This document shows, in pieces, positions 1,095 to 58,040 of a stretch of 64,000 nt of DNA. The position numbers and the translations under genes are program-made. Positions within the stretch are counted from its first letter, which is position 1. Every line of letters starts with the position of its first letter. The notes beneath the pieces are model-generated. The model was given only the letters and a program-made list of their open reading frames with translations. It searched no databases and was not told the DNA's origin. The DNA is from Takakia lepidozioides. Its lineage: Eukaryota > Plantae > Bryophyta. The stretch covers positions 60,264,001-60,328,000 of the forward strand of contig CM060731.1 of assembly GCA_030704615.1 (NCBI GenBank), in the 5' to 3' direction.

Positions 1095-1106
1095 TCTGTG
1101 AAGCCT

Positions 1107-13772: not shown

Positions 13773-14248
13773 TAAAACAAGCCTGAAGCATATACTCCTT
13801 TCCTCTCAAGAAGCGAAGTTGCAAAACAAAGGGGCGAGCGGAAAGAGCAAGGAGCGGAAAGAGCAAGCAGCGCGCGAGAGGAGGATCAAACACACGAATC
13901 AGACACTAAGCAGCTCTCATCCAAAAACTTGTACACCCAAATCACATATATCGCAACACCCGAGTACACCGCCCCGACCTTGTGTCAGGGCACCGTTTTT
14001 ATACAAAAGCCCTAACCTTAGTGGCCCGCCGCGTGGCGAGGCATTATAGGCCCAAGCCCATGGTGCTGCCTTGCAGCCCTGGAACTAACGAAGGGCCAGG
14101 ATCAAGCCACCAGCCTAAACTAACCCTAACCTAAACATCATTGTAACGGATTAACGGCTTTATAGGCCAAAAAAATATACGATGAATGTGTATCGCCGTT
14201 TTGGATGAAACGGGTAAATCTGTGATGAGGAAAGTTTGGGGCATCTCA
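13773..14248 (-). repeat. 5' LTR of the Gypsy element
   Basis: Direct repeat of 635-1094. On the minus strand it starts TGAGATGCCCC and ends ...CTTGTTTTA, directly abutting the PBS. Confidence 0.95.
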
Positions 14249-22869: not shown

Positions 22870-23070
22870 TTTTTTAAAAAGGAAACCTCATGCCCTTGAG
22901 GAGGGGGGAAAATTAACCCCCTTTCAATTATGGGCCATGAGACCTACAGGATGGTCAACGCCCAGACATACCGTCTCGAACAATCCCAAACACGAGGTAG
23001 GGCAGTGGGTTTGAATTTTTGAACCCCAAACCAGCAGGCGACACACTGTGCACTTACTAGCCGATGTGCT
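22870..23070 (-). mobile_element. SINE copy (family of 24560-24770)
   Basis: Reverse complement shares TCGGCT.GTA, TTTGGGGTTCAAAA and CATGGCCCATAA.TGAAAG with 24560-24770. Confidence 0.6.
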
Positions 23071-24229: not shown

Positions 24230-24367
24230 CAACCATGACCCCCTGACATCTCCCATGTAGGTCTCATGGCCCATAAATGAAAGGGGGTTAAATTTTCCCC
24301 TCCTCATGGGCCTGAATTCTAGGTTGTCGCTCTCAGGTTTCTTTTGAGGAAAAACAAACAAAAAAAA
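24230..24367 (+). mobile_element. 5'-truncated SINE copy
   Basis: GTAGGTCTCATGGCCCATAAATGAAAGGGGGTTAAATTTTCCCC followed by an A-rich tail; matches 22870-22950 (inverted). Confidence 0.55.
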
Positions 24368-30629: not shown

Positions 30630-32149
30630 GCTTTTCTTCCGAGTCGCCAAACCTCTCACCTTCCTCCCCCTGTAAGTACGCCTGAATCCCCTTCCTCGCA
30701 ATCCCAATTCCACTTCCACGGTTTTTTTTTTTTGGGCAGACCTCTATCAAACCTCTATCTCCCCACACCGTTTGTTTTCTTGATCCAACCTGTCTGTAAC
30801 CTGTTGCCTCAAGCAAACCCTTGCACCAAGCCACCGATAAGGTCGCAGTGTTGTGCACACAACAGCAACACGTACAGGTAACAGGAGGCAGATCAGCGGC
30901 AACCTCCACCCGCCATGGACATATACGAAGCTTCCATGGCTCACCTCCGTCTCGAACAGGACCACCACACACCTCTCACGCTCAAAACAGACACCTTCCA
31001 ACTAGGGTTCCGCTCAAGCTATCGCCAGCCATTAGCCATTATTCCCATCAGCGTAACTGCCCCGGAGAAGCCGGCTTCTCCAGCCCTGTGTCCGGATGAC
31101 CTTTTTTGGCAATTCTGGCGAAACTTGTGTGTGCCCCACCACCAAGAAGCAGCTCCTGGTTTTGAATTCGCATGATTCGTCTTCCCACTGGCCCTTACAG
31201 CCACCCCCGTCCCGATCTGGGTTCAAATCCCCGTGCACTCATCTTTTGACCCTCACCACGTATCGCTCTCTCCTCGAGAGTCTCCCAACTCATGGGCGAC
31301 TTTTTGAAAGAACCGCAAGTGTGGGAGGGGAAGCTTCCCGGATAAGTCATTGGGCCAGTGCAACGGTCACTCGGATTTGAGCTCGGGTCGGTAGTCTGGC
31401 GAAGCTAGGCCTATCCCCAGTTTTAGAAAATAAAAATAAAAATACCTCCCCACCGAATTTTTCATCTTCTTTTTATTTTCACCAAATAAACCCGAGCCTG
31501 CCTTTAAAAAGAAAAAGAAAAAGTAACCCGAGCAGCCGTGCCAACGAGTCAGCCAGTGTTTCGGATGGGACTTTTTAGATTATTCATTTTTCTTTAATTT
31601 TTATTTTTATTCAGCAATCAGCTCAGCACTTCAAAAAGACCCGTGATGGGAACGAGGAGGTTCAACGTCCTCTTTCAATGAAGAAGGCCGACATAAGCCT
31701 GAACTCCCGTCAGCACCCCATGCATGTGGACTCTGGGAATCTAGGGTATCCATGCTTCTCTCACATACTCTTTGATATGCACACTGAAGCTCGAAAGGCG
31801 TGGATTAAATTGTCTGCAGACGTCTGCAAGCATCCACAGTGACTGCCAAGACTCGGAGGTAGACTGGAAATCTTAATATGCTCAAGCCCCAAGTACACCA
31901 GCTCGCTTCCACCATCGAACTGGCGAACCTAGGCACGCTTTTCTCTATTGAACTGGCGGCACCTGAAGGGTAAGCAGCCCGCGAAGCCGAGCTTTGACAG
32001 GTGATTGCTCCCATCTTCAGCGACTCCTTTGGGCGGTGGTTGGATGTTGGCGGGGCCCTCTAGTTAGGCCTCACTCGTTGGCCAGCAGTTACGAAGGTCT
32101 AGTCTTGATTGTGCCAATCAGTGCTAGCTGCACTGTCATCTTCATGTTT

Positions 32150-34610: not shown

Positions 34611-35649
34611 TCTCACCCTTAGTTCCTCTCAGATTGTGGAAGCAATTGAGCATTTTCATGATGTGTAGGGTTCAGGGTAGGGTTTTGTGTAAAGCAGAGG
34701 TAGAGGTAGAACCGAGCAAGGTTTAGGGTAAATCTAAGTGAGTAAGAGGTTGTGTATGGCAGAGGAATGATCTTTGGAGTGATAAACTGATGGAAAAGGG
34801 AGTGTGTGGGGCTGGACTGAGAGTGAGGGAGAGGCTGGAGAATGGCTCATGAAATGTATATGCTTACAATGACTGAGATGGTGATTGGTTTATATAACCA
34901 AGCCTATTACTACTATGATTGGCTTGTGAACTTAAGGCATGAGTGGTTGATTGTTTCATTTCGAACCTGATATGCTTTGAGCCTGGTTCCGGAGATTTAT
35001 CTCCAGACCTGCAATCAGCTTTTGTGATGAGTTTACAATCTGCATATATGGTGGTAAATGTTATATATCAAACCTTGGTTCTTTCCTAATGTGAATGACC
35101 TGGAAACTTTGTTAGAAAGATGAAATTCCATGCATTCACGCCATTGGATGCCAAACTTTTCTTGGCACGTTGGGCCAAGGTTTGTATGTGTTCACGAACT
35201 GCTGACCTTGCTCGTTGCCCGGTTGGCCTTATTTTCCATCATTGCTAACTTTATGGGGTGGAGGGGCTTGTGTTAGGCTGCATCAAAGCGTGCAAAGGAA
35301 GGGGGGACTCAGGCTGTGGCGAATGCTACTGGTCCACCTACGACATGGGTGCAACAAGGCCCGAATGGCCCATGGGTGCAATCCAAAGGTGGGCAAACGT
35401 GGCTGCAGCAAGGAGCACCTACCTGGCAGCAGCCCATGGCCCCTCCATAGACGACGAACACGTGGTCATGGATTCCAAGTGGGTCCAATGGAGGACCCCA
35501 AGGAGCTTGGGTACAAGGAGGTGCCCAAACTTGGGGCCCTCCATGCAACGCCGCTGGTGGGCAGTGGGCAGGCCTCCCTTTTAATGGTGCTGCTCCTCCA
35601 TTCACCCCCCCTGCTGGTGATGATCAAGATTCCACACAACAAGGGGATG

Positions 35650-36480
35650 TGGCGTCGCAGGCTGCAAACAAAAAAAGACAAAAAAAGGTTGGCTGCAAAG
35701 GAACATGAAACTGATGCAAAAGCCCGCAAATCTGTTGGGCTGAAGCCGCACAAGGTACAACTAAACTCTAAGGGGGAAGTAGACCAGGGGTGTGAGGGGA
35801 AGGATTACTGGCAGAGCTCCTTGTGGGGACTCTGCATCAGATATCTTGATCCTAGCATTTTGCTAGCAGACAAGCAGGAACCCACTGACATGGCCAAGGT
35901 TAAGGAATCCATGGACGTGGATTTTGAGTACTATCCTAAACTTATGAGCGTTGACAAGTTCCAGAAAGCATGTGGGAGGATTATAAAAGTACACCGCCAA
36001 AAGTTAAAGCTGGTGTGGTTGGCTGGAGGTCCATGCCCTCCGAGTGGAGAGTCCTGCCATTAGGATGCATTGGTGAAGTACTGGGATTCCCCCAAGGGCA
36101 AGAAAGAAAGTGAGAACATGAAGAGAGCACGATCCAATGTTACCAACCCATCGAGGGTTGGAAGAGCAGGGTTGGCTGGACAAGCCCGACGCTTGGTAAT
36201 ATGAATATCTGCACCACATTTTAATATATATATACATCTATATGTATATACATATATACACATGTATGTGATGGAGTAGGATACCATCTCTGCCCTATGA
36301 GGTAGTTGCAAACTGTCACTATAGTCATGCCTCTGTGAACGCCCCACTTGTTTGGATGAATATGGGCTAATTTTTTTTTTTTGTTGTGGCCCAAGCAGAA
36401 GAAAGAGAGAGCACGAAGTCCAAGCATCACTGAGCTGGCACACGCATCAAAGGCGGACAAGGGTTTAAGCTCCCAGTCAA
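35650..36480 (+). pseudogene. CACTA TnpA-like (Ptta/En/Spm-type) gene fragment
   Basis: DALVKYWDSPKGKKESENMKRARSNVTNPSRVGRAG matches the W..LV.YW.S.....S..N..NR......H..G pattern. Premature stop and intron present. Confidence 0.65.
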
Positions 36481-36589
36481 TTGGAGGTGCACAGGTAAAT
36501 GGTGTGTGGGTATTTTTGCTGGAGCAGTAGCCAGGCCATGCGGGCTGATTATGTGTCTTTCTTTGGCTGTATAGGGAGGGGGTGAAACA

Positions 36590-37024
36590 TTCAATGACTT
36601 CCGAAACCACTTGTTGAGTGACCACAAAATGACTCATAGAGTCATTCTATGAAAACTGAGAATATACAATATCACTCACAGAGTGGTTATGTGAGTGGTT
36701 GACGTCTCTCAGCAGGTCATTGGAATGATTACCCTCAGAGTGGTGTGTAAGCTATTTGAGTCATTCATGGTGTCTCTCTGAGTGGGAACTATGGATTGGA
36801 GTCATTACTAACAGAGTGGTGTGTAAGTGATTAGGAATACCACTGGAGGAATTCATACCACTAGTACAGTAATATATTTGTGACTACTTATACCACTATA
36901 CAAGTGGTAATATAGGCAATTGTGTGCATTTGGCTACTCCCACATTTTTAAATTATACCACTATTATAGTGATGTGCAAGTGATTATGAACATGACTAGA
37001 GGAACACATACCACTAGTGTAGTG
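36590..37024. mobile_element. Right end of a CACTA element (subterminal ACCACT/AGTGGT array and terminal CTAGTGTAGTG)
   Basis: More than ten ACCAC/GTGGT motifs in both orientations, ending in TAGTG at 37024. The matching left TIR was not found. Confidence 0.65.
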
Positions 37025-37235: not shown

Positions 37236-38480
37236 CTAAGCCATCTTCATGTTCTTCTCTGGCCAAAGACAATTCAAACCAACGACATCCTCCAACATTG
37301 TTTGCGGTGGGACCTCTTCCTCGTTAAGGTGAGGCAAGACACAATTGGCAATATAGATATCATTTACCTCAACCCGCCACAATCCCTCAGGTATAACACG
37401 GCAGTGATATGTATCTTTGTCAGGCACACCAGTGACAATTCCACTGGCAGCCCTGTGTCGTGGTAAATGAGGATCATACAGGCTGATTTTGTCCTTCAAC
37501 TTAAACTGCACACAACACCCACCATAAAACCCACATTAATCAACCCATGAAGACATACATGTACATTGAAAACTAGATAATGAGCACCGCCCAGTATAAG
37601 CAATCACTGAAAGTGTAGAGTACTTTTGGTAGCATAAGAATATCTGCCACTGTGGCAGGGGGTTGCCTTTGAAGGCGCTGCAGGTGGTGCACTGTCAGTG
37701 GCAGTATCAAGAGCGGCTTTCTCAGCCTGCACACATCACGCCCAATACCCCTTAGCAGTTTTATTTAGCAATGCATCTACTAATAGTTTGAAGTACCCAA
37801 CATGTAAATGGCCACATTGTACAGAACTGATAGCCAACAGGTGCATGCATGCTCACCTCTAGTACGGAACTGCTGCATGGAGAGGTGCCTCCTGAAGGCC
37901 CACCTGACTCTTACTCCCGCTAGAACTTGGTGTTATGTCACCATTTGCATCAGTCAAGGACTTTGTGCCTTTGGCAGCAGTGGCTCTGGTTACACGCTCT
38001 CATTTTCGCATGTACTTCTTATCAGCTCCCTTCACGATGGTTGGGGCAGGGTCCTCTGCTTTAGTCCCCTTCTACATGCCAACAAAACAACAAGGTATAG
38101 TACATGAGTACGTCTTACCATACCTGATGCATAGAATTCATGGCACACACCAATAAATAGATCATTCATGAAATGTTTTAGAGTCAAAAACAGAAAGCCC
38201 AAGGACAGGAACCAAGACAAAGTCTTTGAGGACGTACCTCTTTCTGTGGGGAAATTGGCTTCACATGCTGATCTGCCAACCCCCTACTGTCACCCTTACC
38301 AGCACTCTCGGTGGAGCAGACGTCCTCACCAGCAGCCAATATTGCTGTCCCGCCAGCTCCACCTCCCTTCTTACGTGGCAATTTATCAGGAATTCCCTTG
38401 CGCCCCAATTTTACTTGGGTCACCACAAGGTCCTCAATGGCAGACGACTTTGGCTTTTCCCCAACCTCAAGAGGTTATCC
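37236..38480 (-). pseudogene. 3' exons of a second CACTA TnpA-like gene, cut by the element starting at 38507
   Basis: The last exon AASGIVTG...YHCRVIPEGLWRVEVNDIYIANCVLP......LEDVVGLNCLWP resembles the En/Spm TnpA C-terminal domain. Upstream low-complexity exons have GT-AG borders. Confidence 0.6.
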
Positions 38481-38873
38481 CTGCACCCAAGCAAAACACA
38501 CGTCTCCACTACAAAACGGAAGTGGTTACTTTACCACTATGACACGTCATAAGTGGTTGGTTTACCTCAGTGACACATCATTGACATGTCACAGTGGTTA
38601 ATTTACCACTGTGACTCGTCAGCTCACAGGTGGACCCGGACGTGAGTGGTTCGAACCACTGTCCTTAACCACCGGTGCCACGTAATGTCTTTTACCACTC
38701 ACTTGTCCTAATGCACTGGTTCTTCATCACTCTGGGGCCAGAGTGGTTTAGTGTCTTTTACCACTCAAAGTGAGTGGTTAACAGAGTAGTTATTCTGCGT
38801 TTTTCTTCTAGTGGTATTTACAGACGTAGGTTTGTCGAGGGCCTGGAGTATTTTTCTAGGTCTTCTGCACGCA

Positions 38874-41800
38874 ATGGGGAACGACATTCGCAAGAAGCGA
38901 GCACTACAAGAAGCATCAAAGCCAAAGAAGGGAAAATGCAAGTCGTCGGCAGCTGGCAATGATGACAATGAGGCCGGGACTTCCGAGGAAAGAAGAAACA
39001 GAAGGAGGATCAGGATCCAGCATTGATGTCAGATAATAAGACACCTAAAGCTGGGGAGATTTTTGACAAGGAAAAATGCGAGAAGATGGAGGAGAGGCTC
39101 ACGAAGGAATACAATGATGTATTTCCATTCGGATTCGAGAGTACCTTCCTTGTGAAGGTTTCCATGATGGAACTAGCTCCAAGGAGCATGGTTTACATGC
39201 CGTTAAATATCAAGCATAAGGACGAAGTGAAAGCGCAACTCTTCCAACTTCATTTGTTCGACTCCAAACATCCGGTGTATCTTGCGCCAATCAACCCTTC
39301 CAATCCCGAGAAGATTGCTTCATCGCGACCGAAGCAATGGAAGGAGATGGACGTATCAAGGTTCTTCGTAATTGGTGGACAACACACCATCGTGGCAGCA
39401 AAGGTAATGGACTTCATTTCCTCCTAGACCTCTCTTTTAACGAACCTCCACTGGGCAGTGGAGGTTGGCGTTGAACTACAAAATTGGATATGTCCCCACA
39501 CTTTCAACTCTCTCACCCTTTTTACATTAACTGTAGCAGGAACTTCTCGAGGATCTTGCCGACAACGAACTGAAGGAGTACTACCGGGAGTGGCCTGCGA
39601 AGATTGTATGGTCTACCGATGAACAAAGGCTCCTTAAGTTGTCAAAGCTCCTCAACGATCCCAATAAGGCGCAAAAGTTTGATACAACAATGCCGGAGAA
39701 AGTTGTGCATGCGCGAATGTTATTCAACCTGAGGGGGAAGCCAAAGAAATACAACGATCACACCACCAAGTCCGAGACGAAACAATGGAAGGTATGCATT
39801 TATGGAATCAAAATCTACTATTCACATTCATTTTATGCTAAAGAATACTTCTGTTGTCGGAGTGACAACTAATTTATCCCTGAATGAATGTGCAGGACTT
39901 CATGTTTGCCTGTCATTTGATACTAGAAATGGGTAGCATTAAGGAGGCAATGGTCCTGGTACTTTGTGACGACGCCGTTTGGAAGATATGGGAAGATGTT
40001 TTCAAAAACTGAGAGCAGGGAAAGCTACTCGACCCGCTTGGGATACAGTACAAGGGTGAACAGCAACAACTCACGAAATCTGCTATCGCAAAGCTGCAAG
40101 GGTTGAACAGATGGCAGCTGATAAAAGTTGCGCAGAAAATCCTGGACCTAAAATTGACCATTCGAGATTACAAAGGTCAAGACAAATCAATTCAAGGCAT
40201 GAACAAGTACATAGACGACATGAAAATGCGCCGGTTTATTGTCGACGATGTGATGGAAGTGTTGGGGTGGCCTCGGAAGAGCAAATAGTGCACGGAACCG
40301 TACACTAAGGACGAGTGGCGTGAAGTGAAGAGAAAGTACCACTTCAATAAAGCAGAGTTCTCAACATTTAAAGACAAATTGGGGACAGATTACATCCAAA
40401 GCAAGATCAAGATGAACATGGAGACAAAACCACTCACGGCCGTTTTTGTTAAGTACGTCTCCTCCATCAAGAAAGCTTATGAGGATAGAGAGGATGCCAT
40501 GGCAATTATTTCAGCGAGTTTCAAGACTCATTACGCTATCATGGGTGGAGAAACAAAATTCGCCGATGTCAAGTCCCGTCTGCGACTCGCACCGAAGAAA
40601 CGGTTTGACAACATAGCGATGGTGTTCGTCAATACAGTTTCTGAAGACGACTCTATCGTATTTGAATCCAACGATTATGTGAACATACTGGAGGCCTTTG
40701 TGGCTCAGAAAATGAACATGAGTGCTTTTGTTTTCTTCTCGACGCAACCGTCCTCAGCCAATCTGGTCTCCTACATCCAAAATGGTCCCGGAAGAACAAC
40801 GTATCTTGTCTGTCAGGGATTTTATGTTCCGGGAGAGTATGAAAATATTTACAAAAACAGCACGAAGAATTTCTCTCGGACTGTACTGTGCCTGGACTAT
40901 GTTTTTTCAGCGACACCTGAGGAGATGCAGAATCCGGACGAGCACATCTCCACCATACTGTTAATCGAGCCAATACAGCCGATTCTGGAAGGGCCCTCTG
41001 AGAAGCCATCAACTTTTGAAGAAGAGTGCAAGACTTATAATCATGAGCTACGAGCTGACACATACGACTATTTGGCCTCCCTGTTTTGTCGAGACGGGAT
41101 GTCCGTTGTCAACATCTTCGGAGGCGTGATGTTGACGTACGCCCTTCATGTAAGTGTAAAACCTTTTTGCATTTTAAATACGAATTTTACATTTTTGATC
41201 AAACACGTCCTCTGTTTTACTGACTGGGTTTATCTGCAAGCAAGAAACATTCGGGTGCTTGACATCAACCACTCAACCAAGAAAAAGTTTTGCAAAGGAA
41301 AAGTTGAAGCGAATTGTAAGAAGCTTCAAATTGAGAATGACAATGTTGCTGAAGAGGTTGACGGCGGAGATGATGATGAGGATGAGGAGGAGGAAGATGA
41401 AGACTTGGAAGAAGGAGGCGGACATTCCGAACACGTAGAGGAGGACGAGGGCATCGATGATAACGGGGACAACGAGGGCCACGATGGTGACAATGCAGAC
41501 CGTTGGGAGGCTGGACACCTAGATGTGATTCAGGACTTCAAAACACAGTCACAGGATGGTATTGAGAACATCACCCATGACGTTACGGTCCACAATGTCG
41601 TGATTCTGGATGGGGATTTGTCGAGTTCAAGCGAGAGAACTAAGAGTAATCCTGCTTCACCATCAAGGGGTGCGGAGGTGAGCTCAATCGAGGTGCGCGA
41701 CAATTTTATTGGGAGTGCAGACGTCTGGTTCAAACCTGTAGAAGGGGATAAGCCGGCGCCAATGTCCCCGTCTCCCACAAAAGAGAGGGTAGAGAGAGCG

Positions 41801-44153
41801 AGGCCAACGAGCCCGTGTCCCACAAAAGACAGCGGACACAGAGGGAGGACTAAGAGCCCGTCCCCCGCAAAAATGGACAGTGGTGACAGAGCCAGGACTA
41901 TAAGCCCGTCTCCAAGAAAAAACAGCGGAGGCAGAGGCCGAACTCAGAGCCCAACTCGCTCTCAAAGTGTCTCCCAGCATGTCAATTTGGATGCAGGTAA
42001 CGAATGACACTTGGAGATTTATGGTGTTTTTAAGCATTATAAATGGAACAAATTGTGTGTATTGCATCTGGTTGTGTTCTGGTTGTGTTTTTGGCAATAC
42101 CTGATCTGTATCTTAATATTTCCCACCTTCTTGAACTTTACATGTGACTGACGGTAAGAAAACTCGTATAGATCCATGAACGGAAATTGGAGGAAATCAC
42201 ACAAACCCGGACAGAATCCATCGCGACTCAAACAGTGAGGAGGCAGGTGGACTTAACAATAAGGGCCAGCCCAACTGATCCGGTCAAACAAACAACCTCC
42301 ACTGCCTAGTCGACGTTGCGAGATGGAGGAAATGAGCCGGAGATGGTCGTTGCTCACCGCGAAGGAAAAGAGAGCGAGCAGCAACATCAGCAAATTCGGA
42401 ACCCCTCCCCGAAACGGGTATACACCTCATAACCATCTTAGCTATGTTTTTCTTTGTCCTTCTTCTAGTTTTCAAAATAAATTAATTGTTCTGTTATTCC
42501 ACAAGATGATATGATTCACCCTCCAATCGACTATCACAAATCTGTGAACCCACAGGATTGGTATCGCCTCTCTGAGGGACCGAAAGGATCTCGACTAGGA
42601 TACTACGTCCTGGTTCTTGACGTCGGTTACCTTGGTGAGGTTTACCTCCGAGATGGCCCCACATCCCCTCCCGCAACCCATCCTTGTGTGTGCGCTGGAA
42701 AATTCAAGCTTGTAGTCCGAAATGGGTTGGACGACTTCCTGAAATGGGTCCTTAAGCATTTTGAGGTCTACTTTTGGAACACTAGACCGTTAGAAAATGT
42801 CCTGGATATAAGGCTGGCTTTGTTTAGAAGAAGGTTTTACGAGGTCAGGGAATTCAGCAATGAGAACTGCATGAAGCATAGACAGACGTTCAGTGCCGAA
42901 TGGCCCAAATATCCGAAAGCGCCAATATATCTTAAACGTCTCTACGACCTTTTCACTATAGACGACCCTGTAGCGTACAAATCAAACACACTTCTTATCG
43001 ACACTGTAGAAAATATGTATAAGTCGTACTTGAACCCAAAGTCGCTCGGTATCTTCCTTCCAAAATATAAAGCGCTCGTCGACCCATACAAGGACAGGTT
43101 TCTTCTTGATGAACTCAAACCGCACCTGGAAGAGTTGCGGTAATCCGGAAAAGACGATGATATATTCAACGTGGAAAAACCCATAGGATGTCCACTGTAT
43201 AATGACCCAAAGGTCAAATGCCTCTTGCTATGGGATTTACAGTGACAGGTTTATCTTAGAAAACAAAAATTTCCTGACGCTTCATTGGAACAGTTTGAAA
43301 CGTAGATGGCTGCTTTAGATTTTCATGAACCTCGACTGTCCAGTGGACGTTGCTCCCAATGTCAATCCTGTCCTTGGTTTATCTTGATTACCACCTGAGT
43401 GGATGTATGAATTTCTCACAGATTGCAGCACCAATTTCTCCAGTTGCGAAAGGATTGCGCTTGATAATTTTTGACCTGAATGAAGTTTTGTGTAAAGTCT
43501 TGAAGCACCAGAAGAGCTATAGTGTCCCCCAAATGTCCAAGACAGACTACACGATACCAGCTCTTGTTGGATTTCGACTTGTCTATAGGCGGGAAAAATA
43601 TCGTGAGATGTGGACAGAGTTGAACAAACATTTCCGTCTAGGTATATGGAGCTGCATGATGTACAAGAACTTGCAGCCTATACTGGACTTTATGCTTCGG
43701 GGTCTCCCTCAGCCGACATTCGTTATGTCTCAGGAAGATTGTATCTCCTGTCCTACTTCTATCCACCCTCAATTTATATCAGGATACGACCCGCCGAGTC
43801 TGTTCTTGAAGCCATTGATGACGGTCTGACAAAGATTTGGTGGTCAGTACAACCTAAGTAACACTCTACTTATTGACAATTCAGCTATTTAGTGTGTGTT
43901 GAACCCGCCTGAATCCTGCCTGACTCTAAAATCGTTTGAATCCGTTGAGACGGACTCTTGCTATCTCCAGAAGGTTCTTCAGAAATATTTGCTTGAAATG
44001 AAGAAATCTCACACCGTTTCCAGTTATCTCAGGGAAAAGAGGATAGGACTTAAGCCTTGTCAGATTGTTTCCACCGATCCCAAGTTTAAGCCTCTCCTGG
44101 ATTATGTTGATGATTCTAATTACGGGAATCTCCGATATGATGCTTCAAAATAA
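38874..44153 (+). pseudogene. Cargo gene A: ParB/Srx-like + beta-class DNA MTase-like + acidic + SP-repeat + two FCP1/SCP-like (HAD) domains
   Basis: Exons ~38874-39403, 39540-39791, 39896-41149, 41240-41996, ~42170-42417, ~42505-43348 and 43422-44153. Motifs: FFVIGGQHTIVAAK; HELRADTYDYLASLFCRDGMSVVNIFGG; VLVLDVG..VVRNGLDDFL..NTLLID; LIIFDLNEVL..GIWSC..NTLLIDNS. Several in-frame stops and one early frameshift. Fusion of all exons into one gene is inferred. Confidence 0.6.
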
Positions 44154-44165
44154 AGATTTTATTGA

Positions 44166-46900
44166 TCAACCACGTCTGTGATTCAATGTTTGAAGAAGAG
44201 GGTCGTGCAATTGAAGGGAAGCCAAGTGCCTGGATGATGCTTCACCGTCGATGACAGAAATCTCAACAGTAGTGTGAACGTTGTCCCTCTGTAAACGAAT
44301 TTCTAATATGGAGGATTCCAATGGAGGTCCCGACAATAAGTTGGCATCAGCAGCATCGCCATGAATCTGCAGAAACAAACTTACTAGGTCAATGTACAGA
44401 CACGGGATAACCTCCACTGCACAGTGGAGGTTGTCGGATTTGAAAAAGCCCCCGAGACGAGTTTCGGAGAAGGCCTGTATCTCAGAGGATCGGGATGGTA
44501 TGGGGTGGAAAAACGCTTGGATGAGACTAGGAAATAGCTTGGCATATGGATATGTTGAGGTAAGAGTGCAAATGCAACTGCAAAAGAATTGGAAAATCAA
44601 ATTATGAACAAACAAGATAAGAGTGGGATCCACGTGCCTACCAAGGTAATCAGGTTCCTTTTGTTGTGGGATCCAAATACGAGGATCAAGATATCTTCCA
44701 TACCAGGCCCAGCAGGCATGGTCTCGACCAATAGGCTTATGAGACCACTTTGTCCGGTTCTCGCTAATGTAATCAATAACTGTTGAAGCTCCAGCCATCT
44801 CCGATATATATGACCACACTGCTTTTGTCATATCATCCCGGTCATGCAATCCGTTTGGTGAAGGTTTGAATGAGAAAGGGAAGAATCCAGTATTTTGTGG
44901 GTTTCGCAGGCCTTTTGATGGCTCATCATCTACAAGAAGTATTTGCCCCTGCGTAGCAAACGGTCTACCAGGGTACCTGACAATAACATTTTGAATATCA
45001 TTCACGAGATATTTCATCCCGGGCCTGATATAACCGGTGGTATCCTTACAATCCTCAGCAGACCATATGAAGCAAAACTTCTTTGCTAGTTTTGTGGGGA
45101 CGAAACTCTCCGACATCCTACAAAGAGCACCTCTATCAGCACATGACCAAATGGCAACGTGAAAATGCTTCAATGCAAGGTCCAGAAACTCCAAGACTCC
45201 AGGCCGAGGCACCACAAATGGTCTGTCAGGAACTTGAAGTGTCACATTCCTGAAACGAAATTTCTCCTTAAACAGTTCACCGTCGGTTGGGGGTGGCCGG
45301 TAGCAGAGGAGTCCATTGACACTCAAAATTAACAACATCCGTTTCCTCTTCCCCGCTGTTGCATGTAAAGGATGAGAGACAAAGTTATCCTGAGCAGGTT
45401 AATCACACACTGACATTAGTGTTTCTGCCATGAAAAATACCCACGACCCAGAATGATTGAGTGTATGGAAGATCAACACGATTGTGCAAAAAATGGCAAA
45501 AAATGTTGTGGGCTTGGAATGTTTCATGAGGAGGGTGAATATTGCTAAGAAGAGGAACGTCGACTACCAAGTGGAGGTTCAGGAAAGTACCTTGTACGGA
45601 GGGAAATTGATGAAGGTATCGTGCTGCATCCCCGCCTGTTGAGAAAAGATGGAGTTAATTAGTGCATAACCAAACGAACAGAAAAATAAATAAATAAAAT
45701 AAAATAAAATGGAGAAATGATATTGAATAATACCGATGTCGCCTTATTGGAAAGTCTCGCTGGCGGACTTGGCATCCCAATGGACGTGTTTTGACGATAC
45801 CCCGGTATGTCCGAGGTATTCCTTTTCTTCCTCGAGTCTGCTTTGTCTCTGACGAAGGACTTCTCTCCGGTGGAACTGATTTGTAGAAGAGATGGAAATG
45901 GTTTGGGGGCCCTATTCCGCTTATTTGGTGCAGAACATTGCGCCAACACTGCAGGGGGGAAGCCCAGAAGTTGCAATTGAAGTTTCGTCCTTGTCCTCGT
46001 TGAAAGGGTTTCGGAGAAGGGGAACGGAATGTAAATTGTCCCTTGAGCACTCCACATCCTGAATGGAATTCACACGTAACGAAGGGATTACCTCATAACG
46101 GATTTCCAATGAAGACGTCGTTTGACAGGAAGGTCACAATCCGCAGATTTTCTGGCTTGGAGTAAAACAAGAACATCAGACCCAGTACTAAGGAAAACAA
46201 AAGGACGAGTTAGAATTCAGATATAAGTAATTTTACCTGACTCCTTCTAATTTGGGCTGTCCAACCTTCGTGCTGGGGAGAGAAAGAGAGAAAAGAGGCA
46301 ACGTTGTGCTACGGAGCCGCGTCCTCAACGGATGACATTCTCGAGGTAGATTTCACACCATTGACACTTAACACGGAGGGTGAGGATTGTAGAGTGAGGT
46401 CCACGAAATCCCCTGCACATTTGTCAAGTTGTCTTCCATCTGCGACATTCAATCCTAAACAATCCTGCAACAGAATATCATTTTCAGGATTTGGGCCTAA
46501 CATTTGTCATTTCCATCGCCTCTCCCCAGTTACATTCAAGGAACGAATTCTAAAAGAGGAACAAGAGCTGCGTGATTGGGAAGAATGGCGGACGTGCCGG
46601 GAGGCTTCAAGGGCATCAAGTAGAGTTGGCAGTAACATTTCAGATGACAATGTCAGCCGGTTTCACCTTCCTGAAAGTATCTCCGTGTCCTCTGGAGCGG
46701 AGACCATTGCAAGTGGTTGTGGTAACCGGAGGCGTCTTCAGACACATGCCTTGACTGCGAGCCGTTTGGGAGGAGGCTCAGTATTATTAATGAGTTAGTA
46801 TAAGCCGTAACGGTTCTATGCCTTCAGAATCTATGGCTTGTATGGCATTAAGTCCATGAACGGATGGACAATTGACGTTCATTTTTTTGTTGGTCCATCG
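44166..46900 (-). pseudogene. Cargo gene B: low-complexity N-terminus and an FCP1/SCP-like (HAD) domain
   Basis: LLILSVNGLL...VVPRPGVLEFLDLALKHFHVAIWS...FIWSAEDC...ILLVDDEPSKGLRNP (44800-45345). Upstream exons at ~45740-46150 and ~46240-46900 contain stops. Confidence 0.7.
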
Positions 46901-47339
46901 CCTTGAATGATATAATCTCAAATAAAATATGAATGTTTCATATCATCAATCGGGTCCCAACAGACTCGTTTTTCCATGTTGTCCTCTCCATCATTGTTTC
47001 ATATTTGGTTCTGCCATTATTCCATGTTTGTTTTTGTATGTCATTTTGGATATCGGAGCTCTCATCATTGTTTGATTCATTGCATCCTCCCATTCCTTTT
47101 AATGAACGTCAACTTGGCAGTGGATGTTCATCTAAGACCACAATACATACTTGTATTTTTGCGTAGAATGTGTGGAGGATTACATAATTTGTTGTTATAT
47201 AGTGCACAAATAGTCAAATAATTAGAGATATATCTATTTATTTCTATTATAGATTATAATTATTCATATATCTTGTATTATTTCTGGACCAAACAAAAGT
47301 CCAGAATTAGTTAAAATATAGTTACAAGCTTAACCGGAG

Positions 47340-49540
47340 GCAATAGCCCAAAGGGGGGGTTTACAACTATATGACTTGAGGTCCGTTTGGTAGAAACTTC
47401 CATAGATGTCGGTGTTCTCATCCCGACGTTCGTTTGTTCCCCTCAAGCGCTTGTTCCCCACATCCATTTTCGAACCGGTTCTATACCTAGTAGGTGCGGC
47501 GTCATGATAAGCAGGTTGGGAGTCAAGGCAGTACCCGTTTTCCGGTAAACCCGGCGATCCAAAGTGCCTGTTACCTAACTGCTTCGACTCCTTAACTTGC
47601 AGGTGCGGCCTGGCCCTTATATAACTACTTGAATCTGCTCATGAGGTTATAGTTGTTGCTAATTATAACATATCATTAATTGTTACTAATTTATTTTTGT
47701 GCTGCAGATTGGGATGACTTTTTAGAGGATTATGGAGATGCAATTGCCAGATGTTGTCTACGGCAAGTTGAAACCGGTCAAGCTCAGGAGCAATTTTGCA
47801 CTTGGTTTATCAAGGCAAAACTTACGTGTGAAACTTCCATGGAAAAAAATGTTGCTCATGGTATATGACTCTAGCTTTAACATATGCTGACGAAGCTACC
47901 ATGCTTGCTCATCTCGACATCACCAAAACCAGTCCTCGAGGTTGTTCTCTTAGAGATGCTTACTTTGACACTCGAATTTTTTTTGTGCGAGGTGGTGTTG
48001 AATTGTATCATCTGAGAGAATTCACTTGATCACCCCCTAAAAGTGCGCAATTCAATTGAATTGCAAGGGCAACTCAATTGAACTAACCCTAATTTGCAAT
48101 TCAATTGAATTGCTGACTACACTTCAATTGAATTGTAATCTATAATTTTTAACTTATTTTTGTATATAATATATAATATATATGTACATGTATATATTCA
48201 AATTATATTTATACACATATAAGAGTATAAGCTAAAAATACATGTTGCCCGTCTATTCTTGCTGGCCCTCTTTCTTGTGCCCTTGAGGAAATTGTGGAGT
48301 TGTGAAACCAGCCTCAGCCTCAACGAGAAAGGGAGAGCCAGAGACGGAGACAGATCAGCAGCTTCCTGTGATTCACTAGCAAAAGAAACATGGCTGGCTC
48401 CGAAAAAAACAGACAAAATCAAACCTGACAATTGATGAAAGGCTTCCCCTGCATCACCATGTAGTCCCCTAACAATAGTATCTGGCCAAGGACAAAGAAA
48501 ACAAAAATTATGTTCATCTTGAGAATTATCAAAAATTTGGATACCCTTACAAAGGTATCATGTTGAAGTTGGGATGTGTGTTCTATATAAGTTTAATATA
48601 TCAAACTCTTACACGTTGATACTCTTACATTGGTATCATGTTTGGTATATGTACATAGCCATATATTGGCACCAACATCCACAAAGAGAGACAATCCCGC
48701 TTTTACAAGTGCTTCGTGACTTCCCCTCTCTCTCTCTCCCTCTCTCGCTCTCCCTTAGGCTTATCTTGGGCTCAAGCCTTACCACGGGCAAAGGATTGAC
48801 AGACGGATAGCAAGAATAGACAGGCAACATGTATTTTTAGCTTATACTTGTGTATATGTATAATTTAAATATATACATATGTATTATATACATAAATAAG
48901 TTAAAAATTATAGATTACAATTCAATTGAATTGTAGTCTGCAATTGAATTGAATTGCGAGTTGACAATTCAATTGAATTGCCAATTCGCAATTCAATTGA
49001 ATCGTGTGCCGACAATTCAATTGAATTGCAAATTAGGGTTAGTTCAATTGAATTGCGTTTGCAATTCAATTGAATTGCGCACTTTTAGGGGGTGATCAAG
49101 TGAATTGCGATGCATTTCACATCAAGGCCTTTTTGGAATTCCCTAGACCATCACAGGCTGGGTAAAAAAAATGGTTTTGGTTGTATCTGGTGCTCCTGAC
49201 AGTAACTACTCGAATAAGACAGGACGAGCTACAAGCTTAAGAGGCTTAATATGATGGGAGTTCCAATGGACTATCAGAAACACGGACCATCACTCACGGA
49301 AGCGTTTATGAGGTACAATATTGACCAAGATGGAATCTATGACCCCGCTATTCAGAATATCATGTCTAGTGAGGTTGGTAGTGGTGGAGATGTGAGTTGG
49401 AACGAGGCTTTGAAGGTTAAAACTAATTGGTACTTGAAAGCTCAATACGGTATTCAGGAGAACAATCAGTGTCCTTCGGAGATTGAGGCTTCTCATAACG
49501 TTCCAATTAATTTGGATGGGATTGCAACACTGCCGCTCAA
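47340..49540 (+). pseudogene. Cargo gene C, unknown product, interrupted by the TIR element at 48023-49102
   Basis: The reading frame ...FVRGGVELYHLRE|LRCISHQGLFGIP...MMGVPMDYQKHGP is restored across the insertion. Its stops are TAA/TAG, compatible with mutated Gln codons. Confidence 0.5.
48023..49102. mobile_element. Non-autonomous DNA transposon with ~230-bp TIRs and AATT TSD (Sola1-like)
   Basis: TIR begins CACTTGATCACCCCCTAAAAGTGCGC and contains arrays of the palindrome CAATTCAATTGAATTG. TSD AATT (48019-48022 / 49103-49106) is fixed by reading-frame restoration. Confidence 0.8.
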
Positions 49541-51212: not shown

Positions 51213-54200
51213 ATGTACCGGATGGTTAGATTCTCGCCATTTCGCAGACGTCTTTTTACCGAACAAAAACTTTCCAGTACTTCGCAACTTTCTTCACAAA
51301 ATGTAGGGAGAGGTGGGGTTTTCTCCACGCAACTCTCTACCTTCTCAGTTTCTTCAACCCGGAACTCCCATTCAATGATAGAGGCTCCTATGGGGTCCTT
51401 TTCCACTGCCAAGTGTAATGCTCGGGCAATCTTGTCGTTGGACTCCAATGGCTGCTCTTTGTTACCTTCCAATAATCCAGTCAAATTGGAAGTGCCCTTC
51501 CAGTCACGAAGTTGTAAGAAAGGGAGCTTGACGGACAGAGTGGGTGGTCACTCGAGTTGGGCTGGAGTACATTCTGGCACGGTGAAAATTACATGCAGTA
51601 GCAACTTTGGTGGCGTTGGAATTTTGGCTGGAGACTGTAGTAGAAGGAAATTGTACCATGGGTTTCGGAAATCTTTCTTTCATGGTAAAGAAGATTTGGC
51701 TCGTGGGCGCGGATTTACAACGTGGGTTGGGGGTTCAGGCTCTATCCCCCCAGGACATGAGGGTGGAGATGGCGCAGTTAAGACGGAGGCAGCAGCTGAC
51801 CCCTATCTTGCAAGAGAATTAGCCTTGGATGCGGTGGTTAAAATCTTTACAGTGGCTAGCAGCCCCAACTACTTTCTTCCTTGGCAGAACAAGCCTCAAA
51901 GAGAAATCACTGGTTCTGGTCAGTTCTCTCCCCCCGGGCTTCCACTCCCATCAACAAATTCTATTCCCAAACGGAATAAATAAGAGGCGGGGTATGAAGT
52001 GCATGCAATGAATTGCCCGACGTTATTGTATTCTTAGCTGTAAATCAGTATTTCACGCCCACAACTTCAGCGCTCCCCTCCTGGGGTTGGGCGGCCCTTT
52101 GTTGGGACTGCTACAAGTTTGCTACTAGCAACATACTGCTGGTTTGTTAAGGACACGAGTCTCTTTATGAGGTCCATACGAAAGGGCGCCCCTGAGGTTC
52201 CTAGTCTGGTTGCAAATAACTTGTGTGTATGTGATATAGACAGTTGCATTGAGCATCAATGGAGTTGTCATGCTAGGATAATCAATCAATAATGTGCCAG
52301 CAAACACTTCTAAGCAACGCAGACAAAGACATTACAGTCAGCCTCTTGATGTCTCCATCTTCATTAGACTCAGTGGATCTGATTTTCTTTGCAATCAGTC
52401 ACACATGTGAGTTTGCACTGTGCGGCTGGCACTATTGTAGGTTAGATGATATTCAACCACTCCATGGACTGTTTTCTCCCCAGCTTGGTAAGGTCTCTGA
52501 TCACTCTGTGGAGATTTACTGTACTTATTGGGTCAAAGTTATCAGTTGTCTGTATCCATTTTGGGAACATGTCATCATCTTTTGCAGCAGCATGAAGAGG
52601 AAATATAAAGTTTTGAAATTTTGCAGGTTTTGTGATATCCGGGGGACGAATAGTGACAAATGCCCATGTGGTTGCTGATCAGACGTTTGTATTGGTGCGC
52701 AAGCATGGATCACCTATAAAGTACCGGGCTGTTGTGGAGGCAGTAGGGCATGAGTGTGACCTAGCTCTGCTTCATGTCGACAACAACGACTTTTGGGATG
52801 GAATGAGGGAGCTTGAATTGGGAGACATTCCTTTACTTCAGGAGTCTGTCGCTGTTGTGGGATACCCCCAAGGTAGGGATGTACCAGTCAAATGTGTCTG
52901 CATTACCAGGGGAATCATTGCTGTGCCTGTTGTGAGAGTTGTTGGTCTCAAGCAGAGACAAGTGGTGGCTTTAGATCCTCCTTGTTTGGGCATTTCCTCT
53001 TACTGTAGGAAATTCTGGGAGGAATTAGTCACCATTGACACCAGTTGAAATTGTTCTTCTTTTCATGAAATATACAGGGGGTGATAATATTTCAGTGACT
53101 GGTGGAGTTGTGTCGAGAGTTGAACCTACACAATATGTACATGGGGCATCCCACCTGATGGCTATTCAGATTGATGCGGCCATCAATCCTGGCAACAGTG
53201 GGGGTCCAGCGCTTATGGAGGACAAGGTGGTGGGGGTGGCCTTCCAGAACCTTCCAAATGCCGAGAACATAGGGTGTGTAATGGAATATCTTCTCTGATT
53301 TTGTCACTCTCCCCAACAGAATCTGTCTTGCATTCTGTCATTCATACTCACTTTTAGCATGGTGTGGGGTTGTGCTCACTCCCACAATTTCGTTTAATTT
53401 AGTTTGATTTAGCAGGCCGTGTCTTCACAATTTTGAATAGTCACTGCTCTGCAGGAAACTCCAATGCACACATTCTCATTCTTTGTCTAAGTTTCTGTAT
53501 GATATGCACACATGCATGTGCTTCAACATCACAATATCAAGTGACCAACAAAGGTGGGGCTGATGAAATGTGGCAGGTACATAATCCCTGTACCAGTGAT
53601 CAACCATTTTCTGTTGGATGTGGAGGAGTCAGGGCGTTACATTGGCTTCTGCTCCTTGGGAGTCACATGCCAACCGACTGAGAATGTGCAGCTGCGGGAG
53701 CATCTGAGGTATGAGTTAAGAGAATGCTGACAAAAAATTGTGTTTTCCAAAGTAAAAAAGCTTACATGGTTTGCAGGATGAGAAGACACGAGAAATCTTA
53801 AAAAGCACATCTCTGTCTCTGTCTCTCAGTCCCCACCACCCCCTCTGATATCATGAAGTTTGTTCAAGTCATCATCAACCTATTGATTTTACATTATGTC
53901 GTAGTCTGAGTGTATTGTTGATCAAGCTTGCAGCCTGAAAGAATTGTCTCATCTCTATTGTGCAGCCTCTCTCTCACACACACAATGGTAGTGTATGTTC
54001 CCTATTGTTCCTTCAAGACTGAGTGCAGGGTCTATGGCCAGGAGGCTGTAGCAAACAATGTCTTATGAGTACATTCTCTCTCTCTCATTCATCACAGGGC
54101 ATACAACAATTGAATATACATGTAGAGATGTATTCGGTAACTGCTCCATGGGGCTGTTAGCTGTTGAGGACATAGTCCCCATGAGACTTCAACCCTTCCT

Positions 54201-56818
54201 GGAACTAGGGTCAAACTCTCGAGTGTCCGATCCTTAGTGAAGATTGGCACCTGGGTTACCTGAGTTTTTCCCCTAAAGAAGGAAACAGTCTTACCAAGAA
54301 AAACGTTCTACGGTGTCTGATAGGCCTGCTGAGTGAGCCTCCCATGGATGTACTAATGAATTGTCTTTCTTTTCTCGCTATATTGCATACACATACACTC
54401 AAAATTTCATATGTATCACGGCCATCCTAACTTTTTGCTCCACATACGTGAATGATTTATCCAGAAGGGCATTCTAGAAATTTAAACCCAATCCCAAATA
54501 CTACTGATTTGAAACTTGGATTAACGGTGAATTTCTGGATCTATTCATGTATGTGCAGGATGCCACCGGGACTGACAGGTGTCTTGATTAACAAGATCCA
54601 TCCACTGACTGACAGCTATCGTTGCCTTCAAAAGGATGACGTTCTTCTGGCCTTTGATCAGACTCCCATTGCAAATGATGGAACAGGTAGACTTTACAGC
54701 TTCATCTTCACCTACTCTATTTTATTCTTGTGTCTTGGCCAGTCTTTAAGAGAGTCAAGTAAGGTGCTTTTCTTGGCTGTAACCTAATCCTGATAAACTG
54801 AGACTCCTCTCATAATTGTGAACAGTGAAAGACATTCCACCTCACACACACTCGAGAACTGCAGCTAATCTCCAAACCTGAGAAACTGAAGTCAGTCTGC
54901 AAGTAGTTTCTGGGCTTAAATTTGGGGGCAGTTCTGTATGGTTTCACCCTCCTGGGTCTACGGGGATGGACAGACAGATGTGACAAGACATCCAGAGAGA
55001 TAATGAGGCTAGGGTCAGTAATGATTGGAAGCGCAGCTGACAATGCTGAGATGGCAGTGCATTTTCGTAACAGGGAGCGCATCTCATTTGATCACTTGGT
55101 GTCCATGAAAAAAGCTGGTGACACTGCCCACCTCACCGTGCTCCGTGCAGGCGAACAACTCAACTTTGAAGTGAAGCTCGGCCCTGTATGTATTCCTTTT
55201 TCTGTTTGTTATTCCTTCCTCTTCAGTAGGTGGTTAAATGTGTCTCTTTCTTTCCCTCCATCATGTTCCTCGTTTACTCGCTGCAAGGCTCGGCATTGCA
55301 ATTTTAGTTCAGTATACATATTTAGTTACTGCAGTTAGTACCATGGAGTGTCCAAAGTTCAGATCCTACATAGATCTGCAGTACAATTTGTATTTCATGG
55401 GGAGTCATTGCAGCCAGGTCTCCATGAATGACCTTACGTGAAAGTTCACACCAGCTATGTGACTCTTCTCAAGCTAATATACTCAGGTTATCATGTCTTC
55501 TAACACAGAATTGGCTGCCATGAGCAAAACAATGAGTATTTTTGCACATTCTACTAAGTATTTCCTGCCTACTCCAAAGGAGGGCCAGTCTTCATGGGAA
55601 GTTACTGTAATGTATTGTCACAACCAAGCTATTACCTTCCCCCTGCCCTTTTTGACTTTGCTTACCTTGTTTTGCAGCTTCGGCCATTAGTACCAATCCA
55701 TCAGTTTGACAGACTACCCAGTTACCACATCTTTGCAGGGCTGGTATTCACACCACTGACTCAGCCCTACCTGCATGAATATGGTGAGGACTGGTACAAT
55801 ACATCGCCCCGTCGACTCTGCGATCGTGCCCTTAGAGCCAAGCCCACTAAGGCAGGCGAGCAGGTGGTCATCTTGTCTCAGGTGATGATCTGCTTTGTGA
55901 CGAGAACTGTTGCGGATTTCAAGATATTAAGATACCAGTTTCTCAATTTGGAAAACAAGTACTGCATTTTCTGTGAAGTGCAGTATGAACCATGGAGGGG
56001 AAAGATAGTATGATGCTCTGATCATTCTCAATAGCCAACTGCATATGGAAACTTTGTCTTCAGAATGCTTCACCTTAATCCCCCTTTCAGCAAATGATTG
56101 AGAGCATGAATCATAATTTGTTGCTTTGCTCATGTGACTGTTGCTCCATGAGGGGTTCCATCCACTCCCTTGTGTAGAGGATGCATTGTGTTAGTGCCAC
56201 TCTTTGTGTTGAAATTTCGAGGCTTCATCTTGTGCTATTTAAGAAAGACGTGTGTGCCTCCCCTCACTTAAATAAGAGCTTACTGTAGGATGGGGCTGAA
56301 TGGCAGGTGCTAATGGATGAGATCAATGCTGGCTACGAACGATTGGCTGAGCTTCAGGTTTGTTATACCATATGACATCTGGGTTGTGGGTTGTGCTTTC
56401 CAGCTGCATTCTTCTGCAATTTGTTCCTAGGGGTATTAGGCTTCCACTTCACTAAAGTTGTTAATCAAATCTCCAGGTGAAAAAGGTGAATGGGGTTGAG
56501 ATTCATAATCTTCGGCATCTACGGCAACTGGTAGAGGGCTGTGCAGAGGCGAGCCTTCGCTTTGATTTGGATGATGGACGGGTGGTGGTGCTCAATTATG
56601 AGGCTGCCAAAGAAGCTTCCTTCCGGATCTTGCAACGTCACCGCATTTCGACTCCCACATCTAGCGATCTTTTGGTCGATGAAAGTGTGAGGGAGGAGGT
56701 GCTGGAGTGTTGGGAGCGCCCCTGGATACAGCAAGAGGAAAGTGACTCAGACGATGCAAATAGGGAGGAGGCAGTGGACTTGCCAGTTAAAGTATCCTTG
56801 GTGAGATTCAATAGGTAG
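51213..56818 (+). CDS. DEG10: Deg/HtrA serine protease DEG10 (mitochondrial type), 9 exons
   Basis: Exons 51213-51918, 52627-52872, 53078-53273, 53577-53708, 54559-54686, 55058-55185, 55678-55881, 56307-56357 and 56477-56818. TNAHVV, ECDLA and GNSGGP triad motifs; PDZ regions; [16 protein letters not shown]; presequence-like N-terminus. Confidence 0.93.
53978..54074 (+). mobile_element. Short 3' fragment of the same LINE family in DEG10 intron 4
   Basis: ATGGCCAGGAGGCTGTAGCAAACAATGTCTTATGAGTACATT, flanked by CTCTCTCTCA on both sides. Confidence 0.75.
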
Positions 56819-58040
56819 GTATTTTGTTGCCTTGCCTGCTCCAGCTCCCTATCTTCGACTCTCCCCACCCCAAATAAGAGTTGTGTTTGCGCCTTTTGTA
56901 TGTCAGGTGCACACATGTACCAATAGCCATTATCCTGTTTGGTTGGTTTATTTTCTTATTCTTCACAATGCCCTTTCGACATTGCTACAGGTGTCAAGCA
57001 CCAGCAGCTGCCAGGCAGGTGGTGCTGTATGAAAATAAAGAGAGTTCTCTTCAAAACTCGTTGAATTTGACTGAATTGTTTTTCTTTGAATGAATTGTGG
57101 TGATGGACTCCCTTAATGTAGGTTCTTCAGAACAATCAGAACCTTTCGTAGTCATACTGGAAGGGAATACTGGTGTCTGGAGGATGAAAAAGAGCTGAAG
57201 GTGGTTAACACTGGGTTAACTTGTTGATTCCAGGTGAGTTTGAAGGGCAGGTGTAGAGCATAAATGCTCAAGTTTGGAAGCATTGTGCACGGCGTCTGAT
57301 GGACAGGCCCCAATGGCCTCACAACCGCTGCCATCAAAGGTTGCCCTGCTGATACGGATTTTAGGAATGACAAGGGGAAGTTAGCATGTCCGGAGGGACT
57401 TGCTTATTATTCCTTAGCATTTTTGTTGGGTCAGGATAATCCCAGGGTTTGATCTCTGGAGAAGAGAGAACGGAAAGGATGGAAAGGATGTACGCACTTT
57501 CAAATATGCAAATGATGGGGGTATCAGCCATCCGAGAATGATCAGAATTGATTGTCCAAGGTTTTTTGTCCTCCTTACATCAGCGGTTCCTGAAGTCCCT
57601 TGCGTTTGGCAAATTTGGTCTGAAGCACAGGACATTGGGAGCAGAAATTTCCTATTATTTCACCATGAGTTGATGCTCATTTTTTCGCTACCACTCAACA
57701 TTCTTATCATCTGGTGAGCTCTTGGAAGAAATGCCCACCAACAAGTCTTAGGTCTCTTGTCTCTCTGAGAATCATTCCCTTCTTCATTCGACGACACTTA
57801 AGTTACTCCTGAGTCTTTATGGTGCAGACTCTCAAAAAGTCATGGATGCTCCTTGGGTAGCACCTGTAAACTCTGCCAAAACTCCTGTCAGCCTCTCTAC
57901 CACCATGTGTCATCCCCAGCAGTTCTGTAGTGCTTGGTTCCATTGTTGGACTAATATAGTAAGGGAGCACTGGAACATCAATGTGGTATCACACTTCTTT
58001 GTAGCTCAACACGTACTTAATAAACTGGGAGCCTTGCCAC

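Follow-up and report, generated by a model that had tools for sequence, protein, structure and literature searches.

Gene content of the CACTA-ended element

The 64,000-nt stretch of Takakia lepidozioides DNA analysed here (the window; contig CM060731.1, positions 60,264,001 to 60,328,000) is repeat-rich nuclear plant DNA. It contains, from position 38507, the remnant of a DNA transposon, which is a dead, decayed and right-truncated copy of a high-copy, CACTA-ended element of this seed-free land plant. The remnant carries a putative family cassette consisting of two convergent, spliced genes and dispersed 24-bp dyads (Table 1). The predicted product of gene A combines a ParB-like domain, a helical region, an alpha/beta domain devoid of methyltransferase catalytic motifs, an acidic and SP-rich linker and two domains similar to the NIF family, whereas gene B codes for a third NIF-like domain.

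The CACTA left end reported in a preliminary description of this DNA was confirmed, with all 12 of its ACCACT/AGTGGT motifs situated in the terminal ca. 310 bp from the CACTA at 38507. A second CACTA end was not found across the window with up to three mismatches. The element was previously ended at 46900, but it reaches at least 47128 and probably about 48000. The high CpG content stops at ca. 48,000, at an inserted miniature inverted-repeat transposable element (MITE), which suggests that the copy is right-truncated near 48 kb. This MITE (48019–49106, ca. 1.1 kb) has 94-nt arms that are 97 % complementary and inner AATTCAATTGAATT repeats. No TnpD or TnpA was found inside the remnant: 37 stop-free stretches from 45.4–50.7 kb gave no Pfam match, and the sole Transposase_24 match of the window (36064–36201) falls in a neighbouring CACTA element. 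The missing TnpD and TnpA would fit either truncation or a non-autonomous family. The stretch 47701–47865, which has some likeness to TnpD, was considered as a remnant of it and discarded, having no Pfam match.

Gene A agrees with the spliced gene proposed directly inside the left end. It starts 60 bp inward of the subterminal array and runs on the plus strand from the ATG at 38874 to the TAA at 44151 (ending at 44153), with seven exons and ca. 1,500 codons. Its six GT..AG introns (88–175 nt) preserve a chain of phases throughout, and the acidic tract and SP-rich repeats described earlier are indeed present. This copy is damaged by a single frameshift (near 38985), by nine internal stops and by a CAA acceptor. 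Since the putative exon 5 contains three stops and may hide a further intron, continuity of the gene from its N-terminal half to the NIF domains is deduced from phase. Gene B was also examined as a possible TnpA gene; its 34-residue match to the neighbouring TnpA-like open reading frame (ORF; E = 0.014) has no continuation. A likeness containing RYLDP between 44653–44696 of gene B and 35839–35882 of that ORF (75 % over 44 nt) may be due to chance or be a trace of TnpA.

Table 1. Features of the CACTA-ended remnant (coordinates of the window; obs/exp, observed-to-expected ratio).
Feature	Position	Strand	Remarks
CACTA-type terminus	38507–38525	+	Left end of remnant; CpG obs/exp steps from 0.37 to 0.73 here
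Subterminal array	38521–38815		12 ACCACT/AGTGGT motifs, both orientations; common to other element bodies
Gene A, exon 1	38874–39403	+	Basic N-terminus, then ParB-like domain (first half, closing with GGQH); single-base frameshift near 38985
Dyad 1, perfect	39443–39466		Intron 1 of gene A
Gene A, exon 2	39540–39791	+	Remainder of ParB-like domain, assigned by eye from phage ParB N-termini; not significant alone
Gene A, exon 3	39896–41149	+	Helical region, then alpha/beta domain (ca. 40500–41149); NTVS at DPPY place, IFGG at FxGxG place; stops at 40010 and 40286
Gene A, exon 4	41240–41996	+	End of alpha/beta domain, acidic tract, SP-rich 45-bp repeats (41767–41936); preceding acceptor CAA
Gene A, putative exon 5	42172–42417	+	Phase-preserving, three TGA codons; may conceal an intron around dyad at 42294
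Dyad 2	42294–42317		Putative exon 5 or unrecognised intron
NIF 1	42505–43140	+	31.0 bits, E = 2.5e-7; DVGYL at motif
Gene A, exon 6	42506–43248	+	NIF/FCP1-like domain 1 (DVG in place of DxDxT); stops at 43141 and 43243
Dyad 3	43328–43351		Intron between NIF 1 and NIF 2
NIF 2	43419–43826	+	22.7 bits, E = 8.6e-5; DLNEV at motif
Gene A, exon 7	43422–44153	+	Second NIF/FCP1-like domain (DLN); internal stops 43827 and 43890; final TAA at 44151
Gene B	44166–46900	-	Convergent, spliced, decayed; N-terminal exons rich in Ser/Arg; third NIF/FCP1-like domain at 44700–45383 (SVN); tentative start and exons
Dyad 4, perfect	44409–44432		In gene B towards its 3′ end, intronic or exonic
NIF 3	44631–45383	-	31.8 bits, E = 1.3e-7; SVNGL at motif
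Dyad 5	45556–45579		Intron 45428–45591 of gene B
Dyad 6	47105–47128		Upstream of gene B
CpG-rich remainder, probably element DNA	47130–48018		55-codon, plus-strand, exon-like stretch at 47701–47865 (no Pfam match); stops at MITE insertion

Domains of the predicted proteins

The three FCP1-like pseudo-phosphatase domains originally described, the third of them in the convergent gene, all score above the Pfam gathering cut-off for NIF (21.8 bits). None of the three contains the DxDx(T/V) catalytic motif that defines FCP1/SCP phosphatases (PMC7281111), the first or the second catalytic Asp being missing in each. The similarity to FCP1/SCP phosphatases of the RNA polymerase II carboxy-terminal domain (CTD) is one of family (PF03031), without the motif. 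Judged by motif, the predicted cassette product is neither an active FCP1 phosphatase nor a canonical methyltransferase. The DLN/SVNG pattern would seem closer to the DxNG-type FCP1-homology subfamily of plants and fungi than to true CPL/SCP enzymes.

Profile searches were done exon by exon and introns split both the ParB-like and the alpha/beta domains, which lowers the sensitivity for both assignments. Profile matches to ParBc, N6_N4_Mtase and NIF had been anticipated; NIF was matched three times, whereas Pfam gave no match for ParB or methyltransferase. The ParB/Srx-like domain, searched in halves, had no match in Pfam, PHROGs, NCBIfam or PDB, but has moderate support from other features. 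Exon 1 has Atlas feature scores of 0.90–0.94, with eight out of ten family-bearing matches in a single clan (DUF6551, ParB_N, DUF3723), and its GGQH motif aligns with the GGHQR box of phage ParB-methylase fusions (hhalign, E = 0.06). The nucleotide-binding box (GxRR/GQHR type) reads GGQHT, its arginine missing in the present copy; at position 39198, by eye the place of the ParB N-terminal arginine, other copies have Arg and this one Met. The region of exons 1 and 2 is quite likely to be ParB-like.

The alpha/beta domain, previously described as a beta-class amino-methyltransferase fold, was not confirmed as such. It had no match of this kind in Pfam, PHROGs, NCBIfam, PDB, 1.8 billion representative sequences or a phage tblastn search; our own 15-sequence profile did no better than shuffled sequences (527/1000); and the single-sequence AlphaFold models, with a predicted local distance difference test of 39 and 35, were too poor for a meaningful fold search. 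A beta-class methyltransferase is consistent only with the order in which strands and helices are predicted and with a stretch like motif I, where the best local hhalign alignment is found (E = 0.67). Motif IV, (D/N/S)PP(Y/F/W), is absent, its position (set by eye) reading NTVS (40631–40642), and the S-adenosylmethionine-binding FxGxG after it is not intact (IFGGV, 41114–41128). To turn NTVS into any (D/N/S)PP(Y/F/W), four of its 12 bases would have to change (P ca. 0.002 for a copy ca. 4–5 % off its family), too many for the absence of the motif to be due to decay of the present copy. Leaning on the algal precedent described below, we somewhat favour a methyltransferase fold for this domain.

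Neither word-based searches for homologues of the alpha/beta region, the NIF 3 region and the ParB exon nor sequence searches of PDB found anything, and the same holds for tblastn against phages (E = 10) and for pattern scans of contigs from metagenomes, viruses and prokaryotes; Atlas features for the alpha/beta region gave nothing usable. These blank searches are no proof of novelty. The single phmmer match among the 1.8 billion representatives, a PAS-repeat protein over 58 residues, was spurious, and the one bacterial contig matched in a dyad search was unrelated.

Family-specific dyads and CpG retention

The six dyads, as well as the CpG retention that begins at the CACTA end, had been overlooked in the preliminary description. 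The dyads fit the consensus AAC(C/G)TC(C/G)ACTG-NN-CAGT(G/C)GA(G/C)GTT with 0–3 mismatches, with a chance expectation of ca. 0 at up to three mismatches, and all lie within 39.4–47.1 kb, there being no further dyad in the rest of the window. Their 16 invariant positions are perfectly symmetric, their flanks are unrelated, and at least four out of the six are in introns or spacers. The two arms vary independently, often breaking hairpin pairing, and several sites fold poorly. A role as hairpins, either as an RNA or a single-stranded DNA stem, was ruled out because arm changes occur without compensation; the dyads thus fit protein half-sites, and predict the binding of duplex DNA by a protein dimer. 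We infer that they are cognate to the ParB-like protein A. The dyads and the CpG retention support the earlier idea that this protein binds element DNA, with the internal dyads, rather than the ACCACT arrays first suggested, as its likely targets.

The CpG obs/exp is 0.77 over the element (0.84 in exons), whereas the coding parts of the Copia and Gypsy elements have 0.27–0.33 and the neighbouring CACTA element 0.32; values of 0.6–0.8 are also found elsewhere in the window, in some long terminal repeat (LTR) and other stretches. The ratio climbs from 0.15–0.41 to 0.73–1.05 exactly at the CACTA end, a coincidence that ties this end to the cassette by composition. A lineage that replicates in an under-methylated state would be expected to retain CpG in this way. 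A second CpG-retaining stretch (30001–32000, obs/exp 0.79) contains no identified gene.

Other copies of the family

Copies were compared using public DNA contigs of the same organism, whose summed depth is not a copy number. From 38.8 to 44.4 kb, including the ParB-like and alpha/beta domains, NIF 1, NIF 2 and the end of gene B, depth is ca. 4,000–9,000 in most bins, versus ca. 50–70 for single diverged contigs; as a rough estimate, the family has on the order of 100 copies. Depth over the terminus is 25,000–53,000, compared with ca. 5,000 in the body, and contigs have loose ends at 38810/38814. Linkage of the CACTA end and the body across copies is deduced from depth and composition, no listed contig bridging this end and gene A with certainty.

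The lesions were checked among 40 listed differences, which include the frameshift, two of the stops and the acceptor. Other copies have the missing base at 38985, TGG at 40010 and TTA at 43141, and the acceptor before exon 4 is CAG in 17 out of 17 covering contigs; the checkable lesions of gene A are thus absent from most or all other copies. The listed coding differences comprise 10 synonymous and 20 non-synonymous changes, as expected from neutral decay after insertion. A diverged contig of 987 nt (82–84 % identity) matches exons 2 and 3 collinearly and differs in the intron, and another one matches both flanks of the acidic and SP-rich tract, with the tract itself unmatched. The even multi-copy depth over all domains and the absence of the lesions from other copies indicate, at the level of sequence, that the cassette consists of element genes and not of Pack-type scraps. 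This agrees with their earlier portrayal as dedicated genes that later decayed, unlike Pack cargo, as do the phase-consistent seven-exon frame and the collinear relative. Better material than this dead, truncated copy would be intact ones from other parts of the genome. Two independent RNA data sets contain a contig 91 % similar to the second half of NIF domain 1 (42899–43139); both contigs run on into the same unrelated sequence, and could be a transcribed relative or a fragment within another transcript.

Comparison with known systems

The giant DNA transposon Sola1-1_Ec32 from Ectocarpus encodes a ParB-like and N4/N6-methyltransferase-like accessory protein of 1104 aa, proposed to bind and modify its own element (PMC12477816). 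Gene A likewise codes for a large accessory protein with a ParB-like and then a methyltransferase-like part; compared by description, the brown algal element is from the Sola1 superfamily, with neither NIF domains nor dyads described, whereas in Takakia both are present and the methyltransferase motifs are absent. The Plavaka (EnSpm/CACTA) elements of Bostrychia contain genes PAG1-3, of which PAG3 is ParB-like and adjoins inverted-repeat arrays; a methylase gene belongs to the same cassette, which moves between superfamilies and for which self-binding has been hypothesized (10.1101/2025.02.11.637652). They share with our element the CACTA superfamily and a ParB-like accessory gene near family inverted repeats. 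They differ in having ParB-2-oxoglutarate oxygenase and methylase-SET as separate genes and tandem repeat arrays; the land-plant element studied here instead joins ParB-like, alpha/beta and two NIF-like parts in one gene, with another gene for the third NIF-like domain, and its dyads are scattered, most of them within introns. The basic ParB accessory design was thus already predicted in seaweeds in 2025, as a hypothesis, and to call the Takakia cassette a new system, as was done at first, overstated the case. Our search, which had most subscription journals outside its reach, turned up no paper describing NIF domains in transposons, nor any on cassettes of this kind in those of land plants, and the NIF additions seem to be unpublished.

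VANC, from VANDAL elements, binds non-coding, fast-diverging repeats, and is the only system shown to bind and de-silence its own sequence (PMC10398659). The same outcome is predicted for the Takakia cassette, whose encoded factor would likewise be sequence-specific and target non-coding sites within its family; however, VANDAL is a eudicot Mutator element with short tandem motifs and a demonstrated function, whereas the protein is unrelated here and its function is predicted from sequence. Bacterial ParB/parS and phage ParB-N6_N4_Mtase fusions (PMC12704722) resemble gene A in their long dyad sites, in a helical region coming after the ParB-like domain and in the order of ParB-like and putative methyltransferase-like parts; they differ from this nuclear, spliced, transposon-borne gene, which has no ParA and, in the present copy, a GGQHT without the box arginine. 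The cassette is probably best likened to the algal ParB accessory cassettes, and perhaps to VANC.

Possible function of the cassette

We propose, with a probability of about 0.47, that the cassette is a ParB/parS-like self-recognition system, probably with an anti-silencing function. Protein A, as a dimer, would use its ParB-like and helical regions to recognise the dyads in double-stranded form, as ParB does on parS, and, by analogy with ParB biology, might spread from them in a nucleoside triphosphate (NTP)-dependent manner. The enzyme-derived, catalytically dead domains could serve as binding or decoy modules, and the outcome would be VANC-like, silencing marks being kept off and the family being kept transcribed.

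Several points weigh against this proposal. No homologue was found in any database, and hence there is no alignment, dN/dS ratio or usable structure; support for ParB comprises feature scores below 0.95 plus a short motif, and that for a methyltransferase was judged by eye. The dyad consensus derives from the six sites themselves, and its core CCACT is also found in the subterminal motif, so that TnpA or another protein could be the reader. The CpG retention can equally result from youth or recent arrival from another host, and the present copy carries many C-to-T and G-to-A changes. Lastly, there is no RNA of the element's own family in the RNA contigs, which match only as short relatives of 85–91 % identity.

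A bolder version is doubtful, in which land-plant DNA transposons of several superfamilies would share a portable ParB/parS-like system: an NTP-dependent clamp would load at family-specific intronic dyads and spread along the element that encodes it, with inactive domains of methyltransferase and CTD-phosphatase type fending off silencing and contacting phosphorylated RNA polymerase II. If true, it would place a bacterial-style sliding clamp in plant chromatin, as a second, independent anti-silencing system besides VANC.

The cassette might instead serve transposition, leaving silencing unaffected, with protein A or B binding dyads and ends so as to pair the termini of a very long element or load transposase onto it, replacing or aiding TnpA. 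The position of gene A as the main transcription unit just inside the end, the CCACT common to dyads and subterminal motifs, the capacity of ParB clamps to bridge and condense DNA, which is textbook knowledge, and the lack of a detected TnpA in the remnant would all suit this role. Nevertheless, the dyads are in introns deep inside the element and not clustered at its end, the NIF and methyltransferase-like domains would have no part in synapsis, and the CpG retention would be left unexplained, making it improbable.

Protein A could also be a self-limiting regulator, repressing or timing element transcription from the dyads in the manner of KorB, while the NIF domains remove or mask CTD phosphates of RNA polymerase II. 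Repression by KorB and similar ParB-family members is textbook knowledge, SCP1 acts with REST in repression (PMC7281111) and the domains do belong to the NIF family; but all three have lost the first or the second catalytic Asp and the element looks historically under-methylated, so we regard this role as quite improbable. An active DNA modifier, with ParB targeting the dyads and the alpha/beta domain writing N4-methylcytosine (4mC) or N6-methyladenine on its own element via a non-canonical active site, has a slim chance. Its predicted strand and helix order and motif-I-like stretch, the algal precedent as proposed for the Ectocarpus protein, and the reported occurrence of 4mC in Marchantia (10.1101/2021.02.12.428880) are set against the distance of NTVS from motif IV, too large for decay, the damaged FxGxG and the negative profile test.

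Finally, unrelated Pack-type fragments captured, or lying by chance, beside a CACTA end and functionless for the element would be compatible with a window without TnpD, right end or target-site duplication of the element, and with a terminal 310 bp common to other bodies and not surely bridged to gene A, but are very improbable given the consistent phase of seven exons, the lesions absent from most or all other copies, the low mutual identity of the NIF domains (24–34 % over short stretches), the relative that retains exons and swaps introns, and the dyads and CpG signature, co-extensive with the cassette and starting at the CACTA end.

Under the self-recognition and anti-silencing reading, the candidate target site on the protein's own element makes the algal hypothesis directly testable in a land plant, and the NIF domains would directly link a transposon protein to the CTD code of RNA polymerase II. 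A family-specific DNA-binding or anti-silencing module could also become a tool for shielding transgenes from silencing.

Other features of the window

The neighbouring, older CACTA piece (35206–37024) contains the TnpA-like ORF on the plus strand, with its Transposase_24 match (E = 3.7e-5), and an ACCACT array (36606–37015), closing with TAGTG at 37024; it is strongly CpG-depleted, unlike the element studied here. A spliced fragment on the minus strand (37239–38474) follows, the element at 38507 being seemingly inserted into one of its introns; its last exon, which has no Pfam match, is one that we take to be similar to the C-terminal domain of TnpA.

A Gypsy element (621–14151; reverse transcriptase, RNase H and integrase) contains a dUTPase-like stretch (10019–10603), and its LTR repeats are split and permuted-looking (698–997 and 13852–14151), broken up by other repeats. 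The window also contains a Copia ORF, a fragment of a long interspersed nuclear element and a 1.4-kb, possibly non-autonomous element (22904–24300) with 45-nt terminal inverted repeats starting with GGGGG. Host genes lie on the right, coding for a DegP/HtrA protease (trypsin and PDZ_3 domains) and a DUF1191 protein, at 51700–56900 and 59421–60590.

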